Positions 18,930 to 28,480 of a stretch of DNA of 64,000 nt are shown here, piece after piece (position 1 is the stretch's first letter; every line of letters starts with the position of its first letter). Below the pieces are notes generated by a model. That model was not told the origin of the DNA, did not search any database, and worked only from the letters and a program-made list of their open reading frames with translations. This DNA is from Botryllus schlosseri (Eukaryota): contig CM119373.1 in NCBI GenBank assembly GCA_051294905.1, positions 5,146,001 through 5,210,000 on the forward strand, written 5' to 3'. The position numbers and the translations under genes are program-made.

Positions 18930-19168
18930 GTGCCTGATTGGCCACAGGCCGTGTAGCTGATGCCTGACTGGCCAGAGGCCCTGCACTTGCCGCCTGATTG
19001 GCCACAGGCCCTGCAACTGTCGGTTGATTGGCCACAGGCCCTGCAACTGTCGGTTGATTGGTCACAGGCCCTGCAACTGTCGGTTGATTGGCCACAGGCC
19101 CTGCAACTGTCGGTTGATTGGCCACAGGCCCTGTAGTTGCCGCCTGATTCGCCACAGGCCCTGCAGAT
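18930..19168 (-). repeat. 30-bp minisatellite (GGCCACAGGCCCTGCAACTGTCGGTTGATT), ~8 units, in a coding-like segment
   Basis: Directly visible; minus frames read (AGPVANQPTV)n or (CRACGQSTDS)n. Confidence 0.9.
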
Positions 19169-19322
19169 GACAAAGCCATTGATGTAGGTGTCTGCACGCC
19201 AACACTTTGGGTTGATTGCAGAAATGCCATCCGCATTCATAATATAATCGTTTACAACCACAGAAGTCGCCGCCTCTCCTGGTACTATTTTTAAGACACC
19301 ATCTGTCACGCGGCGATCCAGC

Positions 19323-19537
19323 CGAACTTTGAACTTAAACTTGTTGTGTCCGTAATCCACTCCGATTGTAATCCACTCCGATTGTAATCCACTCCGATTC
19401 TTCCTTGAGGTCTGAACAGAAAATTGATATATGCATTCCGAACTTTGAACTTAAACTTGTTGTGTCCGTAATCCACTCCGATTGTAATCCACTCCGATTC
19501 TTCCTTGAGGTCTGAACAGAAAATTGATATATGCATT
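19323..19537. repeat. ~100-115-bp tandem duplication containing 16-bp GTAATCCACTCCGATT sub-repeats
   Basis: Two copies (19323-19437 with three 16-mers; 19439-19537 with two), each ending in a minus-strand acceptor-like TTTTCTGTTCAG. Confidence 0.85.
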
Positions 19538-19913
19538 AAGGCATAATCATTTCTGTTACAATTAACATTACTTGTACTATTACACAAGAAATTTTACATA
19601 TTTCAGCAACAAGAATTGACATTTTATATTGAGAAATACGATAGCAGCCAGTTTATTCAATATATCAATCAGATAGCACTGCCCCATCCCAATATCAGCG
19701 AGAAATATTTAGAATGCCAGATTTTGACACAGCCAGCCAATTTGAAATTATACCAGTGACGAATAGCCGGCTATTTCATTGCCAATTGCAGTAATAAAAA
19801 ATTCTATTATGAAACTGTTTGCAAGATAAAGAAATGATGAATATTATGTGCAAAACATATTGACTATGATGATCATAAATTACTTTTAACAATGTCAATA
19901 AAATTAACAATGT

Positions 19914-20307
19914 TGTCCCGTGGGACTGCGAAAGCAATTGTACACAGGATTGAAACGGCTCAGCTTTAGCCGGACTAGAGTACCGGTGCGAGTAATGACG
20001 GACTTCGAGTATCTTCAACTGACTGCTATAAGTCCAGACTACAGACACAATAATATCCCCGTCACGATGTATTGTAGAATCAAGGTCAATCAGTCTGGTC
20101 CAATAACACACCGTTAAAAAATACGCTGGCAATACTCTGAGAAATTACAATAATGTCAATTAGCATGCAAGATCAATAAGAACACCCTGTTAACTGTGCG
20201 ACGTTCTCAGACAAAAGAATGACCACGTGCGCTCAATGCCTGGCCTCGTTCTGTGAGGTAGCCATGTGTAACGAACCGTAGAATACGAGCCGAAAACCAC
20301 CTTGACA
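19914..20307 (-). repeat. 3' LTR (394 bp, TG...CA on minus)
   Basis: Minus strand begins TGTCAAGG (20307) and ends CCCACGGGACA (19914); matches 27172-27528. Confidence 0.93.
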
Positions 20308-20318
20308 TAGCCGCCCCT
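20308..20318 (-). promoter_or_regulatory. Polypurine tract (AGGGGCGGCTA) preceding the 3' LTR
   Basis: Purine-rich tract abutting the TGT start of the 3' LTR on minus. Confidence 0.75.
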
Positions 20319-20562
20319 GTGACGAAACGTAACTGCCAAAGGCGGTTATCGGTGAGCCACAAAAAAAATATATAAAGGAATGGTGGCTTTTGGGTTATGA
20401 CGACAATGAGGGAGTGAAAAAATATGCAAAACAAAAGCAATTGTACAGAACGCTGATACAGTGTCAGTAAGCGAAGTCAATGTAAAAAAAAAATGCACAA
20501 CATTGGCAACTGGGGTGCGAAATTGGCAAGATGCAAAGAGCATGCAATGAAGGGAGTCAAAA

Positions 20563-21669
20563 TCATTCAAGCTCAAGACGACACAAATTGCGGATGTCGC
20601 GACTATAAGTACCAGTGGGAGTACGCACAGTAACTTTTGGAACCAACCCGTGGCCATCCGGAAATGTTTGTTCAACTATGGCTTTCGGCCATTTACCACG
20701 GGGTGCAGAGGAATCAGACATCAGAACGATATCCCCTACTTTGAAATTGGGCGTTTTATCGAGCCACTTCGAACGAGATTGCAACAAGGGTGGGTACTCT
20801 TTCAACCACTTCTCCCAAAAGAGATCGAGTTTACGCTGGACATAGCGCCAATTTTTTGCATAATCATCAGCTTTAGAGAACTTGTGAGTCGGGACAGAAG
20901 TGTCAAGACTCCCCAGAATGATAGAGTTAGGAGTCAGACATGGCAAGTCATTTGGGTCGCTCGAAATGGGCGTCAGGGGCCTATCGTTCAAAATGCGAGC
21001 GACTCCATAAAACAACGCAGATAAAGTATTATCCTGAAAGGCCGCGCCATTATTGAAAGCGCAAAGAGTACGTTTACACAAAGCAACGACACGTTCAACA
21101 CATCCATTGAAATGCGGTGCAAGACTGGGCGAGAAATGCCATTGTATACCCCTGTCCGCTAGGGAGGAGGTAACCTGTTTAGAGTTTAAATTTCCCAGCG
21201 CCTTAGCTAGCTCTTTTTGAGCACCTACGAAAGTCGTGCCATTATCACTGAACATGTGTGAGGTCCTATTCCGAATATCACAGAACTTGAAAAATGCCAT
21301 CAAAAAGGCTGAAGTTTCAAGTGAATCTACTACTTCCAAATGGACGGCTCGAGTACATAAACAGGTAAATACGCAACCATAGCGTTCAAGCTCAGTACGT
21401 TTGCGTTTGCAGCTCAAAGGACCAAAATAGTCAACCATTGTATAATGGAAGACAGTCTTGTGTGGTGTAAGACGGTAACGCGGGAGGTCCGCCATGTATT
21501 GGGAGCCTAGGTTAGCCCGGCTGCATTGGCAGAACACACATTTATTTAGGACTTTGCGAATGGAAGTTTGTCCTTTCATGAACCAAAATTTTTCACGGAG
21601 TAGGGACAGAACTTGTAGGGTGCCACAATGACCATTAGCCACATGGTATTGAAATCGATTGAGTAACAT
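20563..21669 (-). pseudogene. pol: Bel/Pao integrase region
   Basis: HHCC (YHVANGH...CVFC), DDE: VDYFGP, SDNGTTF, CVERVV; tail W..EY...LQ.RSKW...GDIVL...PRGKWP. Confidence 0.95.
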
Positions 21670-21887
21670 GGTGACTAGACGGTAAAATCATGGGATTTTT
21701 TGCGTCATCGGGTAGCTGTGAGCGGTTCAGACGACCCTCGACACGCATGACGCCATCAGATACATAAGGTAGCAACTTTGCCAATGAATTGGGAACATGC
21801 TCTTTGTTAACGAGAACATGGTCGGCGCGCGCGTTGTCACGAAGCGATTCGACAGCACCAGGAAACGACTCGGCTTGTACGAGTCTG

Positions 21888-21978
21888 ACAACTTCCCTCG
21901 TCGCTTCCTCAAGCTCCTCAACGGTGAGGAAGCGACAACTTCCCTCGTCGCTTCCTCAAGCTCCTCAACGGTGAGGAA
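21888..21978. repeat. 47-bp tandem duplication breaking the RNase H-integrase linker frame
   Basis: ACAACTTCCCTCGTCGCTTCCTCAAGCTCCTCAACGGTGAGGAA at 21888 and 21935; 47 is not a multiple of 3. Confidence 0.9.
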
Positions 21979-22026
21979 ACCAGAGCGTGGTTCGAGGAGC
22001 GGATCCGTTGGAGAGCCTTTTATCTT

Positions 22027-22668
22027 TCAGCGCATCATAGAACGGAGCCGAAGAATCCAAGCGGTCGAGCGAACGAGACTTGTAAATGATGAGAAACTGC
22101 GCAAGTAGTCCCTGAACGACACTTCTGTCGGCGACACGTCAGTCGAAAACACTGGTTCCGTTAGCGTGACGGGTTGGTGTGCATTTTCATGGCTAGACCT
22201 CGATTCGAAGGACTGGCGTAGGAAGTCGGGACCTTCGAACCACATTTTTGCGCGTTGCCACTGTTGAGGCATCAGCCCACGCGATCCAATATCAGCCGGG
22301 TTATTTGCCGAGTCGATGTGGCACCATTGGTCGGTACAAGACAGAGCGCGAATCTTAAGCAGTCTTTGATGTACGAAGGTGTTGAAACGAGCCGAAGTAC
22401 TCCGAATGCTTTGGAGTACAGCGGTACTGTCGGTCCAGTAGTGGACGGAGTCGATCTTGTAGTCGACGTCTTTTATGACGTCTCTGGCAAGTTTGGTGCA
22501 GGTTACAGCAGCCGTGAGTTCTAGTCTGGGAATGCTTGGGGCATTCTTTGGCACGACTCTGGAGAAAGAGACGTGAACCTGTCCATCAGGATCCTCAAAA
22601 CGGAGGTAACAACAGGCAGAATAACCATGTGTGCTGGCATCAGCAAATGCATGGAGCTGAATATTCAC
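22027..22668 (-). pseudogene. pol: Bel/Pao RNase H region
   Basis: LHAFADAS, IPRLELTAA, WTDSTAVL, NPADIGSRG. Confidence 0.93.
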
Positions 22669-22844
22669 TGGCGAGAAACCAGGCGGCTTGTAGTATCTCG
22701 GAAATGATAGTTTTTCGAGTTCTGGGAGTGAGTCGACCCATTGTTTCCATTTTGCTTTGAAACTGTCGTCAATCGGTGTGTCCCAATCCAGGTCGTCACG
22801 AGATATTTCCTGCAGGAGCAGTCTTGCCGGTAACAGGAACGGGC

Positions 22845-23312
22845 TTAGATATCCGAAATTCCGAAAGGAGTGTAGATCTGAGCGATCTGGCTGGCGATGC
22901 CTCTTCGAGTAAAAGGCTTAGGTTTGATGTTAGTACGGGTCCAAAGTGAGTCCTCATTCATGTTCCAGATAACTCCCAACGTATGTTCTTTACCGGAGTT
23001 CGTGAAGTCGAGATCCACCAGGCTGGCAGCACGGGCGTCTTCGGGAATCCGCGACATGATCTCGGTCCTGCCGCTAGCAAATTTAGTAAGATTGAAACCG
23101 TAGTGAGCGAAAAGCGTTCGCAGCTCTTCGATGACTTTTATCGAAATTCCAAGGTCGTCTGAGGAATGAAGTATGTCGTCGACATATGTGTTACGTAAGA
23201 TACAGTCAAGCGTAGGCTTGTCGGCACTGGTGCCGTTCAAAAAAACGATCTGACGAAGACAGAACTGAGCAATGCATGGTGAAGACGTGCTTCCGAAGAC
23301 ATGAGACGTCAT
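22845..23312 (-). pseudogene. pol: Bel/Pao reverse transcriptase, C-terminal half
   Basis: HVFGSTSSPCIA, NTYVDD, FNLTKF, LGVIW, IYTPFG. Confidence 0.93.
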
Positions 23313-23354
23313 CTGGTAATCGATCGCTTTTCCATCTAGTCTGCTGTCTTCAAA

Positions 23355-24821
23355 TCAGAGGAAGCGTAGGCTATCAGAGTCTTCCGGATAGACCGCAATT
23401 TTCGAGAACATCTGGGCGAGATCGGCAACCCAAGCGTACCTGCCCATACGAAAACGGCATAGTACTCCAATTAGAGAAGAGTTGACGTCAGGCCCGCTGA
23501 GCAGTTGGCTGTTCAAACTGATGCCCGAGAATTTGCGGCTAGCGTCGAATACAATTCGCATCTTCTGTTGTCGAGTATGGAAATGGATGAGATAAAAAGT
23601 CCTTTCGGATGCAGGAAGTAGGTCGGGCGGGACTACCTGTGCATAGCCTCGATACAGGTATTCGTCGATTTTTTCTTTATACTTGCGGAAGAACTCAGGA
23701 TCTTTCTGGAATTTCGAGCGTTGGTTTTCGAGCGATTTCTCGGCAGCTCCACGATTATATGGCAGCTTCACTTCATCCGTTCTCCATGGAAGACCGACTC
23801 TGAAACGGCCGTTCAATATGTGCGCGGTTTCTTTCATAGTCGACAGCGCTTGTTCGTCTTCGATCGAATTTTGCGATTCATAGGGATCAACCCAAACGTC
23901 CGAAAAATCAGCGTTACAACTAGAGCAAATTGGCAACGTTGGCGAATCAAATCGGTTAAAAATGGTATTCTCAGCACGCACGAAATTCATATCGATAAAA
24001 TTCACACTATTGGGCTGAAAGCCAGATTTGACAAGGGTGCGGTCGGCGCCAGCAAGGGACCAACCGAAAACCGAGAGCTCGGCACCTGGCAGACCATTCT
24101 GGGGCTTAATGATTTCTGTATTTGGGTATTGCATTTGGAAATCTTTTCCTAGGACGAGGTCGACATCATTTGTATTGGCGACCGGTATGTTAATGTGACT
24201 GAGGTGATCGCATTCAGAAATAGTATCAACATTTGGCGTATGATTTTGCACATCGGGAAAATGAGAAGTCGCGAGCACATTTTTTATATCGATAACTGTG
24301 CTTTGATCAAGGGCTTGCACAGTAAGAAAAATCACTTCTACTTCCCCTTCGAAAACGCCACCTGCAGTCGACGTTTCGCAAACCATACGGTCACCCTGGA
24401 TATTTAATTTTTTACGCAACCGGTGTGTGCACAGAACATGGCCAAAGCCTGGATCTAGGAATGCGTTGGTGACCACTCTAACATTTGAATCGGGGGAGGT
24501 GATTATAACCGGTACAACAGATAACCGCACAGGATTTACTTTTCCGTTTAGCAAAGACGACATCGTGTTGACATCTGCGGTTATTTTATTTTGAAAGCCC
24601 CCATGAAGTAGGGTGTGATGTGACGCTCTGCAGCCGCTGACGTAGCACTTACGATCTGATTTGCACGCACGGGCTTCGTGCCCGTAGCCCAGGCAGTTGA
24701 CACAGACCGGCTTTTCTTCTACAAACTTCTTGCGTTCGGCTGGAATCTTCTGGTGGAAGAGGTCGCATTGGTAGAGCGGATGCGAGTCGTCGCAGAGGTG
24801 ACAGCGAGGCGTTGGCTTCAT
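23355..24821 (-). pseudogene. pol: Bel/Pao Gag zinc knuckles, aspartic protease and RT N-terminal half
   Basis: CHLCDDSHPLYQC, CVNCLGYGHEARAC, CYVSGCRASHHTLLH; protease FLDPG..DLVLGKD; RT RIVFDAS, LLSGPD, ADLAQMF. Confidence 0.93.
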
Positions 24822-25957
24822 ATACGTGCAGAGCGTGGTCTTGGTTCGTTGGAGACAGCGACGGGACGATCGACGGACGTTGCATTCACTTGCGTCTTTC
24901 GAGGTGGAAACTTGGTAGCTCTGGCGAACGGCATGCTCGACACGAATTTGCCAAGTCGAGTTCTTGACGTACCAGCTTGTCTACCAACGAAGGCGACAAA
25001 ATTTTTAAACTGCGGCTCGTACCCGTTTTCCATCTTTTCTTCATACTTGCTCGAGAATTTTTGTATGAAGTGGCGTGGAAAACGCTTCATTATTGCGTCA
25101 GAGACTGCCGGTGCATTTACTTGAGCCATTGCGCCAAGTTGCGAGAGGATGTGATTTGCCGACCGAAGCTGATCATATGCTGCAGCCAGCTCACGATTAT
25201 CATTAGGGTTAACATCACCACCATGCGTCAATTCATCAATGAAAGCGTCAATAACGTAGGAGTCTCGGCCAAAGCTATCATGTAGGACGTTACGGGCATG
25301 TAAGTATGCGTCCTCGCCATACCGATTAGCACTGCAGCCAGCAAGTGCGGATTTAGCGTCGCCCGTACAGTACGATATCAGCTTGTTAAGCTTGGTTCGG
25401 GCGTCATGTCTTTCACTAGGATTGGCATTTACGGGTTCAAAGGCACTATCGAATTCGTTTATGAACCGGTAATAATCTCGCGGGTCGCCATCGAAACTGG
25501 CAATTGTAACAGTATTGAGGTCCATGCTACGCTTCATGGAGCCTAACATGGAATTCACCGAGGCAAGATAGAGATCGTTATTATAGTTCGCCGTGCTATC
25601 CGGTGTCATTAGGACGGAAGGACCGTAATCGCTCGGTTGATAGGGGCCAGGAGTGATACTACTGCGGTTATGCACGGGATTACTATAGCCAGAAAGCGCG
25701 AAATCTCCTTGCTCTTGATACCGGGGAATAGAATCGTCGTGCTCGGAAAACGAAAAACCGTCTGGGCGGCGGTAACTAGTCACTAATCTGTTGCGAGAAT
25801 GAGAACTAAGATCGGTGTGCGCGTTCGGCACATTACGAATATCGGCGGGTTGACCGCGAAAATGAGAACGAAGATCGGTGTGCGCGTTCGGCACGTTACG
25901 AATATCGGCGGGTTGACCGCGAGAACGAGGACTGAGCTCGGTGTGCACATTTGGCAC
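24818..25957 (-). pseudogene. gag: Bel/Pao Gag core (DUF1759-like)
   Basis: FDGDPRDYYRFINEF, KLNKLISYCTGDAK, ARNVLHDSFG. Confidence 0.88.
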
Positions 25958-26045
25958 GTATCAGCAGATTGACTGCGAGAACGAAGATCGGTGTGCGCAT
26001 TCGGCACATTACGAATATCGGCGGAGTGGCCGCGAGGACGATGAA
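25800..26045 (-). repeat. ~63-bp degenerate tandem repeat in gag (PADIRNVPNAHTDLRSHFRGQ-like 21-aa unit)
   Basis: GATCGGTGTGCGC..CGGCAC..TACGAATATCGGCGG recurs ~4-5 times. Confidence 0.85.
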
Positions 26046-26513
26046 TGAGATCATTTTGCGCAGTAGGCATGAAATTGTTTTGACGACGATGAATATCGGC
26101 GAGCGTATTACGAGGATAAGAGATATATTCATTGATCAACCGTTCACCCTGCCACTGAGGAGTGCTTCGAGGATATGAAGGAGTGGCCGGCTCAGCATCT
26201 AAATTACGCGAACGAACAGGCTGGGAATGCGGGCCTAGCTCCCTAGACTGGTAACTATAGGTATCCGCTGCGAAACTGACGGACGGACGACAGTTGCGAT
26301 TAGGGTTTTGAACTTAGAGCATGCGCGACTTCTACCCTACTTGCTTGTGCGGTTGGCTGATGGTTGGTTGTCAATGATTGGGTTACCGCCGGCTCGTTAG
26401 CGAGTCTCTGCCCAGTGCTACTGCCCGTTGCAGACGCTGGCGTTCCCCAGGGAACGAACCACGATGCGTGAGTAGCAGACAAATTCAAAGGTTCAGTACT
26501 CACAGCAATGTTT

Positions 26514-27134
26514 TCAGTGTCGGAAATAATCGACTCTCGTGATTCGACAGAACCGGCAATTGATGCTTCTTCCTCGGCGGCTTCCTAGTTCGAGGTAGCT
26601 TCGATCGAGAACCTCAAATCTACCTTCAAATTCGGCATCGATTGTAGCTCTTCTCTGTTCTTGTCTCAGTTTAATCCTTTCAAGTGCCAGCCTAGCGTTT
26701 CGGACTGTTGCTGACGTTCTGGACGGCGTGACGGAATGAAGACTGGATGGTTTCTTCGAAGTTTGGGTATTAATGTAGTCGATGGTGACTTCGGAGGAAG
26801 TGTTCATGCTTCCTTCTTGGTAGGATTGGTAGGCGCGACGTGCATTGACCTGTGCCCGTGAAGCTGTTACTAACAGCTTTTCTATTTGCGGTATCGAATC
26901 TCGAAGGGCGTGATCCTGTTCAACTCCTCCGATCAAGTCTGTGGCGACTTGAGCGCAGAGTTCTTCTATTTCATCTCTGCACTTGACAACGTGTTCGATG
27001 GGCGAAGCATTCTCGATAGAGGAAAGGAAAGCGCGCTCTACTTTCAGGAAAGCGGCGCTGGAGTTTTCGAGGACTTGGTCGATATACTGCTTGCTCAAAA
27101 ACAGATGACTAGCAGCTTGCAGTGTTGTATCCAT
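26514..27134 (-). pseudogene. gag: Bel/Pao Gag N-terminal (coiled-coil-like) fragment
   Basis: First ATG 37 nt downstream of the 5' LTR; helical 206-aa ORF ending at a frameshift. Confidence 0.7.
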
Positions 27135-27153
27135 ATCGATGTCAGTCAGCTCT

Positions 27154-27166
27154 CGTATTTTTTAAC
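27154..27166 (-). promoter_or_regulatory. PBS-position 13-mer (GTTAAAAAATACG on minus), complementary to the element's own LTR
   Basis: 5 nt from the 5' LTR end; no TGG tRNA complement; perfect reverse complement of 27371-27383 and 20113-20125. Confidence 0.65.
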
Positions 27167-27171
27167 TTTTA

Positions 27172-27528
27172 TGTCCCGTGGGACTGCGAAAGCAATTGTA
27201 CACAGGATTGAAACGGCTCAGCTTTAGCCGGACTAGAGTACCGGTGCGAGTAATGACGGACTTCGAGTATCTTCAACTGACTGCTATAAGTCCAGACTAC
27301 AGACACAATGATATCCCCGTCACGATGTATTGTAGAATCAAGGTCAATCAGTCTGGTCCAATAACACACCGTTAAAAAATACGCTGGCAATACTCTGAGA
27401 AATTACAATAATGTCAATTAGAATGCGAGATCTATAAGAACACCCTGTTAACTGTGCGACGTTCTCAGACAAAAGAATGACCACGTGCGCTCAATGCCTG
27501 GTAGCCATGTGTAACGAACCGTAGAATA
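27172..27528 (-). repeat. 5' LTR (outer 22 bp missing, internal 15-bp deletion)
   Basis: Matches 19914-20285 with 4 substitutions seen and loss of CCTCGTTCTGTGAGG. Confidence 0.93.
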
Positions 27529-27570
27529 GAAGTAGCTGTAATTGATTAGCTTAAAAAGTTGTAAAGTTGT

Positions 27571-28480
27571 TGTAGTGATGGGACCGTACTTCAATTTATA
27601 TTTTCAGCAATAGGGAGATCATAGCTTTTTATTATTTCCAATAAACTGAACTGATAACGACAAAGGAGTTGACACGTGACATTACGTCATATCCTGTCTT
27701 GAACCTTGCAGTAAGATGACCACGATCTGTCTTGAACCTTGCAGTGAGATGACCACGATTCTACAACGCGCTTGAGCTGCTTTTGGAGATATTCACCTGT
27801 TCTGTGAGATGGTATTCAAATTACCTGTAATTAGTCGTGGAGAGCAGTGCCGGGGAAAGCGGGTAAGTTTTATTTGTTAGTTAGGTTCGACTGTATCTAT
27901 CATACATTTTGGTTGCAGCGCACCGTATTCTTAATTCCTGAAGCATTCTCGTCAACCATCGAGAACTGAAGAAATCTGATTGAAGTTGCTACTTGCCTTC
28001 CTGGCAACAGAATTGTAAGGTTGCCAATTTGAGTCTGTATTGATGACATTTATTATACTTGTGCTATTCCAATCCATTAATATGAAATGCTGATAATCAT
28101 TGAAGAACGTCAACTTGACATCATTTACGCTGCAACCGTAACTCAACACATGCTTACTGTCACATAATTCCAAAACCACAGATATCAGCGATATGTGTTC
28201 AAAGCGTCAGCGTCACCCACTTATCTGTCTGTAGTCGAGAGAATCTTGGTTAGCACCAGATGCTGATTCCATATTGGTTGTTGTTTATTGTGCTCTCATC
28301 ACAACTCCAACCATAATGTTTCCTGACTACCGAAATATGTATTTGAAACAAGTCAATATGTTGATGTAATAAAACTATATTACTAAGCACCACGTTATTT
28401 GTCTTATTTTAAGATCATACCGTGACAACTCATCATGGCCTTTGAAAAGTTGAATCAGTGTTAATTACGAGTCTTGACCT
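27571..28480 (+). pseudogene. Inverted paralog of segment X (6888-7787)
   Basis: Reverse-complement alignment along ~900 bp; same splice-like junctions (TTTTCAG|, CGG|GTAAGT, TTGGTTGCAG|). Confidence 0.8.

Follow-up and report, generated by a model that had tools for sequence, protein, structure and literature searches.

A primer-binding site complementary to the element's own LTR suggests self-priming in Bel/Pao retrotransposons of Botryllus schlosseri

Introduction

What primes minus-strand DNA synthesis in a retrotransposon whose primer-binding site (PBS) has no tRNA-like TGG and is an exact complement of a segment of its own LTR? The question is raised by a decayed element on the minus strand of the window, the 64,000-nucleotide stretch of Botryllus schlosseri DNA at G000:C3:5146001-5210000. 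An earlier note, made from the letters of this stretch alone, had proposed that the element primes itself with the 5' end of its own mRNA. In the present analysis the layout of the element is re-examined, the paired segments are followed through related and unrelated families, and RNA reads are used to place the segment within the transcript.

Layout of the window element

The element belongs to the Bel/Pao superfamily, as seen from its Pao-type pol domains (Pfam), and its gag-pol region is split into at least six ORF pieces (Table 1). The first ~22 bp of the 5' LTR and one 16-bp block within it are missing, and the target-site duplication of this copy is unreadable because of that truncation. 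The layout described in the earlier note, with an LTR end followed by TAAAA and GTTAAAAAATACG, a 37-nt leader that contains no TGG, the complement in both LTRs and an inverted repeat in U5, is confirmed in every part. Its placing of the 13-mer 182 nt into a 394-bp LTR holds for the 3' LTR (20307-19914) and does not hold for the 5' LTR, which is 357 bp long and carries the 13-mer 145 nt in. At no more than one mismatch, the window contains only three matches to the 13-mer, at 27166-27154, 27383-27371 and 20125-20113.

Table 1. Features of the Bel/Pao element in the window (positions are those of the whole window)
Feature	Position	Strand	Sequence or basis
Bel/Pao LTR retrotransposon, decayed copy	27528-19914	minus	Pfam domains and LTRs
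5' LTR, 357 bp	27172..27528	minus	ends ...GGGACA at 27172
Putative 3'-splice-site-like motif, 11-12 nt upstream of the 13-mer	27395..27402	minus	TTTCTCAG, then A; homology to the L031 acceptor
Candidate self-primer segment, 5' LTR	27371..27383	minus	CGTATTTTTTAAC
Likely poly(A) signal	27326..27331	minus	AATACA; predicted for the window copy by homology, motif conserved in the alignment
Inverted repeat, end of U5	27173..27184	minus	GTCCC-AC-GGGAC
Spacer, LTR end (CA) to paired segment	27167..27171	minus	TAAAA; 0-6 nt in other families
PBS position	27154..27166	minus	GTTAAAAAATACG, exact complement of the LTR 13-mer, without TGG
gag ATG	27134	minus	37-nt leader between 5' LTR and ATG
gag-pol, broken, several ORFs	20563..27134	minus	DUF1759, RVT_1 fragment, Peptidase_A17, Integrase_H2C2, DUF5641 (Pfam)
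Polypurine tract	20318-20311	minus	AGGGGCGG, then CTA, directly before the 3' LTR
3' LTR, complete, 394 bp	19914..20307	minus	TGTCAAGG...GGGACA
Second 13-mer, 3' LTR	20113..20125	minus	CGTATTTTTTAAC

Solo and 3' LTR copies terminate at ACA. The spacer that follows the CA (TAAAA in the window, TAA in the young relative L031) has its counterpart in the CTA that separates the polypurine tract from the start of the LTR, as would be expected if both were trimmed at integration. The end of U5 has an alternative pairing in the window copy, GGAC (27176-27173) with GTCC (27233-27230); RNAalifold finds a 4-bp GTCC/GGAC helix at the LTR end (columns 178-181/243-246) in which two sequences are compensated, which is weak evidence.

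The chance level of a 13-nt match had been put at about 1e-4 in the earlier note, a figure that proves too low: shuffles give about 0.7-1e-3, about ten times higher, because the word is A/T-rich. An exact complement of at least 13 nt between the leader and the 394-bp LTR arises in 13 of 20000 leader shuffles and in 5 of 5000 LTR shuffles; with the match anchored 0-6 nt past the LTR end, it arises in none of 3000 shuffles.

Covariation within the lineage

Siblings that are 90-94% identical retain full LTRs together with target-site duplications of 5 bp. In four siblings the LTRs read TGTCACGG...GGGACA and the duplications are GTAGT, CCTGG, GTAAT and GCATC; that of L031/L033 is GCTAC. Among subfamilies with LTRs that are 70-87% identical, two islands are conserved, namely the LTR segment and the leader site.

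The check for covariation proposed in the earlier note bears the pairing out: in the sequences compared, the predicted LTR:leader helix is kept in related lineages by four compensatory double changes at three positions. One of these defines a clade (L030/31, L032, L037 and L039) that combines an LTR CGTAATTTTTAAC with a leader GTTAAAAATTACG, position 5 having gone from T:A to A:T; the clade comprises four full copies and at least eight further LTRs. Position 3 has changed from T:A to G:C in the L073/77/78/79 family and from T:A to A:T in L089, an independent contig, which is also compensated at position 10 (T:A to G:C). Sequences of these families are given in Table 2. When exact patterns of the two main variants are counted over the whole 495-Mb assembly, both 'A' forms occur together at 11 loci and both 'B' forms at 4, with no mixed locus, and the mixed pattern spans both cross-combinations because both strands were searched.

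Table 2. Leader sites and matching LTR segments in related and unrelated families (a slash marks the LTR end; RT identity is to L071)
Source	RT identity	Leader site	LTR segment	Pairing
L076 family	82%	GTTAAAAAATA	TATTTTTTAAC	11 bp
L073/77/78/79 family	69%	GTTAAAAAATC	GATTTTTTAAC	11 bp + G:U
L089 (ENA contig, ERZ6863655)	74%	GTTCAAAAATTCG	CGAATTTTTGAAC	13/13
L100-103		ACA/GTTTTAAAATA	TATTTTAAAAC	
L099		CA/GTCAGAAACTT	AAGTTTCTGAC	
L097/98		ACA/GTAGATACAG	CTGTATCTAC	
L094		ACA-ttaaa-GTTAACAATAT	ATATTGTTAAC	
Styela clava, first family		CA-ca-ATTACAAATA	TATTTGTAAT	
Styela clava, second family		CA-tc-ATTTAAAAATAGT	ACTATTTTTAAAT	
Clavelina lepadiformis		ACA-ta-ATTTCTACAAAA	TTTTGTAGAAAT	

Intermediate states are also present. 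L004, L005 and L022 carry GTTGAAAAATACG opposite an unchanged LTR, which leaves a G:U pair, and uncompensated changes are seen in decayed copies (L049, L052). In L002/L008 a mutated CGTATATTTTAAG is common to both LTRs and the leader site is intact, a pattern that is expected if the LTR segment of a daughter element comes from the parental 3' LTR.

In a 16-sequence alignment, the long-range LTR:leader helix is predicted by RNAalifold without any constraint, and the pair counts at the three variable positions are 13 UA, 2 GC and 1 AU; 12 UA and 2 AU; and 12 UA, 2 UG, 1 GC and 1 UU. Duplex-energy z-scores, which are weak for A/U-only helices, are -0.8 for L073 and -2.2 for L076. The fold of the whole 5' RNA is no better than that of shuffles (z -0.95), with the helix appearing in the MFE structure and absent from the centroid. 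It should be kept in mind that covariation of this kind is proof of pairing or of copying, not of priming.

Two further observations concern individual copies. Two relatives of the window element, L071 (G000:C5:23771800-23780300) and L072, have LTRs that are 100% identical and a single gag-pol ORF of 2117 aa, and these identical LTRs and the uninterrupted ORF show that insertion by the lineage is very recent. Open frames of about 2000 aa are found in many other Bel/Pao families as well. In L015 (G000:C10:13053534-13053738), an LTR fragment, the last 26 nt (TTTCGCAGTCCCACGGGACA plus TAAAAG) are tandemly duplicated with the first spacer bases included, and this looks like the trace of aberrant reverse transcription or repair.

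Recurrence in other families and species

Four other Bel/Pao families of the same genome, with RT sequences that are 33-39% identical, have different words of 10-13 nt at the place of the PBS, and each word matches the LTR of its own family (Table 2). For L100, L099 and L094 the LTR end was predicted from ACA, and matches to 3' or solo LTRs stop exactly there (query 394, 401 and 394, respectively). The same arrangement is found in two further tunicates, with pairs of 10 and 13 nt in the two Styela clava families and of 12 nt in Clavelina. Under anchored shuffles one Styela family has p = 0.025, and p is <=0.003 in all the other tunicate families. In all, self-complementary sites are present in no fewer than 11 families and lineages of distinct sequence, and there is no TGG at the primer site in any family examined.

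The relatives from Lytechinus and Nematostella show no self-complement match (anchored shuffle not significant), that from S. purpuratus has a match of no more than 9 nt (p about 0.07, not significant), and the octocoral and fish loci provide no usable LTR pair. Within B. schlosseri, L074, which belongs to the 39% tier and has its LTR end near L074:1318, has neither a self-complement of at least 9 nt nor a TGG. The family of this copy (L074/L083-L086, the G000:C9:2919199 family; RT 39% identical) is abundant and has a 180-nt leader that contains four AGTGAACAA repeats.

Place of the segment in RNA

Two raw RNA runs, one single-cell run and one contig set were mapped on L031, not on the window copy. 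In L031 the LTR occupies 1513-1897, the segment 1694-1706, the leader site 1901-1913 and the ATG 1933-1935. L031 itself is hardly expressed, the reads deriving from related LTRs, and the single-cell run has no reads on it. In run X21, 137 reads carry ...AGAGTACATGGG, which we take to be the end of the SMART template-switch oligo, and continue with GATTGGAGTATTTGGTTG and then with the LTR; run X17 contains five such reads. The GATTGGAGTATTTGGTTG part is the spliced leader of the host, being equal to the 25-nt 'Chordata 1' leader (PMC3795323). It is joined to the LTR between AG (1680-1681) and A1682 of L031, 12 nt upstream of the segment.

The 17-mer of the spliced leader occurs 639 times in the genome, followed each time by TATTAAG/GT. 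These roughly 640 dispersed copies of ATTGGAGTATTTGGTTG (L061-L070, for example G000:C1:754999-755015) are spliced-leader RNA genes. The 'Chordata 1' leader marks the host as a trans-splicing tunicate, and the closest named proteins are those of Styela clava. Since the 17-mer is the spliced leader, with TATTAAG/GT after each genomic copy, the reads mark a trans-splice acceptor and not a transcription start. The same identification of the 17-mer rules out a reading of these template-switch reads as evidence for a capped 5' end, which would have required an LTR copy carrying a duplication of 17 nt. A pyrimidine-rich AG is kept 9-12 nt upstream of the segment in related lineages; in distant families an AG is present nearby no more often than expected by chance.

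At the other side of the segment, four reads of run X17 have poly(A) tails after position 1766 of L031, 17 nt past the conserved AATACA, and in related LTRs the segment lies ~60 nt upstream of the poly(A) site. By homology, a poly(A) site is predicted near 27309 in the window, where it would form the R/U5 boundary. The segment thus lies in R near the 5' end of the RNA, because it falls between the spliced-leader junction and the poly(A) site. All of the X17 reads have the 'A' variant at 1698.

These data divide the self-priming proposal of the earlier note. The LTR-complementary primer site is strongly supported by comparative evidence, and the supposed mRNA start at or near C27383 is not confirmed, the mapped junction being 12 nt upstream. 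Likewise, the 13-mer is not confirmed as the U3/R boundary: in the spliced RNA it is internal, at nt 38-50, and none of the mapped reads has the segment at the very start of an RNA, the spliced-leader acceptor being the sole mapped 5' junction. A reading of the 13-mer as a TATA box, with an initiator about 27 nt downstream, fails on the covariation with the leader and on the presence of the segment in RNAs.

One LTR copy is strongly expressed in run X21, as spliced leader, R-U5 and flanking DNA (746 reads; L031:1675-1897). This copy has an extra T in the segment, the change G1727T and the flank ACTACATTAGCCTCC..., and it supplies a trans-splice acceptor to a downstream transcript.

Proposed mechanism

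Taken together, the comparative sequences make it probable that minus-strand DNA in this Bel/Pao lineage is primed in the manner of Tf1, by the element's own RNA and not by a host tRNA. In such a cycle, the R segment at the 5' end would loop back across R-U5, a distance of about 110-250 nt, to pair with the PBS, and a nuclease, by analogy the RNase H of the element, would cut just 3' of the segment (...AAC/G). From the 3'-OH thus formed, reverse transcriptase would copy the spacer and U5 as far as the cut, so that the self-primed minus-strand DNA would be joined to ...CGUAUUUUUUAAC. Transfer of the strong-stop DNA to the 3' R would rely on the ~60 nt that separate the cut from the poly(A) site. 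The PBS of the daughter would be partly re-copied from the primer, which would couple the two sequences in evolution, and in a Tf1-type cycle the 13-mer of the 3' LTR would pass to both LTRs of the daughter element.

The spliced leader complicates this scheme. If the 25-nt leader and the 12-nt linker stayed on the primer, plus-strand strong-stop DNA would receive a non-homologous 3' tail; the scheme therefore requires that the replicative RNA starts at the segment, that the primer is trimmed or that the spliced RNAs are not replicative. It is conceivable, if unlikely, that the element RNA owes its 5' end to the spliced leader, added at a conserved acceptor a short way upstream of the primer segment, and that self-priming then permits replication. 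The cut after the segment would in that case discard the foreign leader before the strong-stop DNA must match the 3' R, and no exact transcription start of the element's own would be needed because read-through from any upstream promoter would suffice. If true, this could explain why self-complementary primer sites are found in many tunicate Bel/Pao families. The link with trans-splicing also raises the question of how an LTR element defines R in a host that trans-splices.

Alternative explanations

The helix between LTR and leader might be a conserved long-range RNA structure that serves some other purpose, for instance in packaging, in dimerisation, in the control of translation or as an aid to strand transfer, the primer being a different molecule. 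The 5' regions of retroelements often carry long-range pairings, as in Ty1 and HIV-1; the covariation and the RNAalifold helix show pairing only, and the segment is internal in the RNAs seen. However, the paired leader segment sits at the exact place of a PBS, 0-6 nt after the CA of the LTR, in every family. The leader is moreover short, with 16-37 nt from the paired segment to the ATG in this lineage, and the rest of it shows neither conservation between families nor any likeness to a tRNA complement, all of which makes a purely structural helix rather unlikely. Priming might instead occur in trans, without fold-back, by a separate short LTR RNA (spliced-leader-capped or prematurely ended) or by a co-packaged second genome. 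Sequence evidence does not distinguish cis from trans, and LTR-only RNAs that contain the segment are abundant, with the 746 R-U5-only reads coming from one LTR locus in one run. That abundant RNA nevertheless reads into flanking DNA, like an ordinary host transcript that is initiated or spliced in an LTR, and no RNA ending at ...AAC is seen; the likelihood of trans priming is accordingly judged to be low.

Self-priming is also to be set against priming by a host RNA, be it a tRNA, a tRNA fragment or a mitochondrial tRNA, with the LTR match as a secondary matter. The expectation comes from the ICTV profile, in which Belpaoviridae are primed by host tRNA (PMC8742986). Against it stand the lack of TGG, the fact that each family's differing site matches its own LTR, and the variants that co-vary with the LTR. 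Runs of four or more T terminate RNA polymerase III, and the would-be primer of the main lineage contains U6, so it cannot be a Pol III transcript and hence not a tRNA. ARAGORN finds no tRNA genes in the window, and there are no Rfam matches in window positions 19500-28000. A host RNA primer is therefore very improbable. Still less credit can be given to chance complementarity in A/T-rich sequence: the 13-mer is of low complexity and the chance level is tenfold that of the earlier estimate, but the recurrence across families and the compensatory changes refute this explanation.

Comparison with known systems

The closest parallel to the self-priming proposed here is provided by Tf1/Tf2 of Schizosaccharomyces pombe, which are Tf1/sushi Ty3/Gypsy elements and, like the window lineage, have a PBS beside the 5' LTR that is complementary to their own R and not to a tRNA. 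The duplex is 10-13 nt long in the Bel/Pao families described here and 11 nt in Tf1; covariation between primer and PBS is common to both, and the R-U5 loop may likewise carry a stem close to the PBS. Unlike Tf1, the present elements belong to Bel/Pao (Peptidase_A17/DUF1759/DUF5641), have a spacer of 0-6 nt and are known from sequence and RNA reads rather than from biochemistry. They differ also in that no RNA was seen to begin with the segment, the mapped junction being 12 nt upstream with the spliced leader attached. The Ty3/Gypsy pol and chromodomain integrase of the Tf1/sushi clade are absent, with only Bel/Pao domains identified by Pfam in the window copy and a full relative. To our knowledge, Tf1-type Ty3/Gypsy elements are the only ones in which self-priming has been demonstrated by experiment, and Bel/Pao elements are confined to metazoans.

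Self-priming is established for Tf1 and has been predicted for Tf1/sushi elements, the plant Tcn1 clade and the Ty1/copia TAR lineage (PMC6317226, PMC5445492). The Tcn1-clade chromoviruses and the TAR elements (Houba, Osr-1) resemble the present case in that their priming mode is sequence-inferred, with no tRNA complement and an LTR-complementary PBS (PMC6317226); they differ in having plant hosts and in belonging to the other two LTR superfamilies. These predictions extend self-priming beyond one superfamily. Canonical Belpaoviridae (Semotivirus) share with the elements described here TGT...ACA LTRs, 5-bp duplications, a Pao-type gag-pol polyprotein and a polypurine tract before the 3' LTR (PMC8742986). 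In contrast to the tRNA-complementary PBS of the ICTV description, the window lineage has no TGG, a T6 run in the complement and a match to its own LTR.

No published report of Bel/Pao self-priming was found in the full-text literature, subscription literature lying outside the scope of the search. What is proposed is thus a known mechanism in a superfamily in which it has not been described; self-priming is likely here, but the exact geometry proposed in the earlier note is not confirmed. If true, tRNA-independent priming would occur in all three LTR superfamilies, either by repeated invention or as an old mode that has been overlooked. Annotation tools that rely on the PBS would mis-score such elements, and host defences that act through 3'-tRNA fragments would miss them.

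Other repeats in and near the window copy

The window and L002 copies are ~1.8 kb longer than the siblings L003-L005. Within the gag region of the window copy, a unit of ~93 nt is present in three tandem copies that are 84-100% alike (window 25801-26069), and the pol region contains a perfect direct duplication of 45 nt at a spacing of 47 (window 21887-21978). Just beyond the 3' LTR, at window 19000-19195 and 19322-19537, a 30-nt tandem array (GGCCACAGGCCCTGCAACTGTCGGTTGATT) is present together with direct repeats of 100 nt in which GTAATCCACTCCGATT is frequent.
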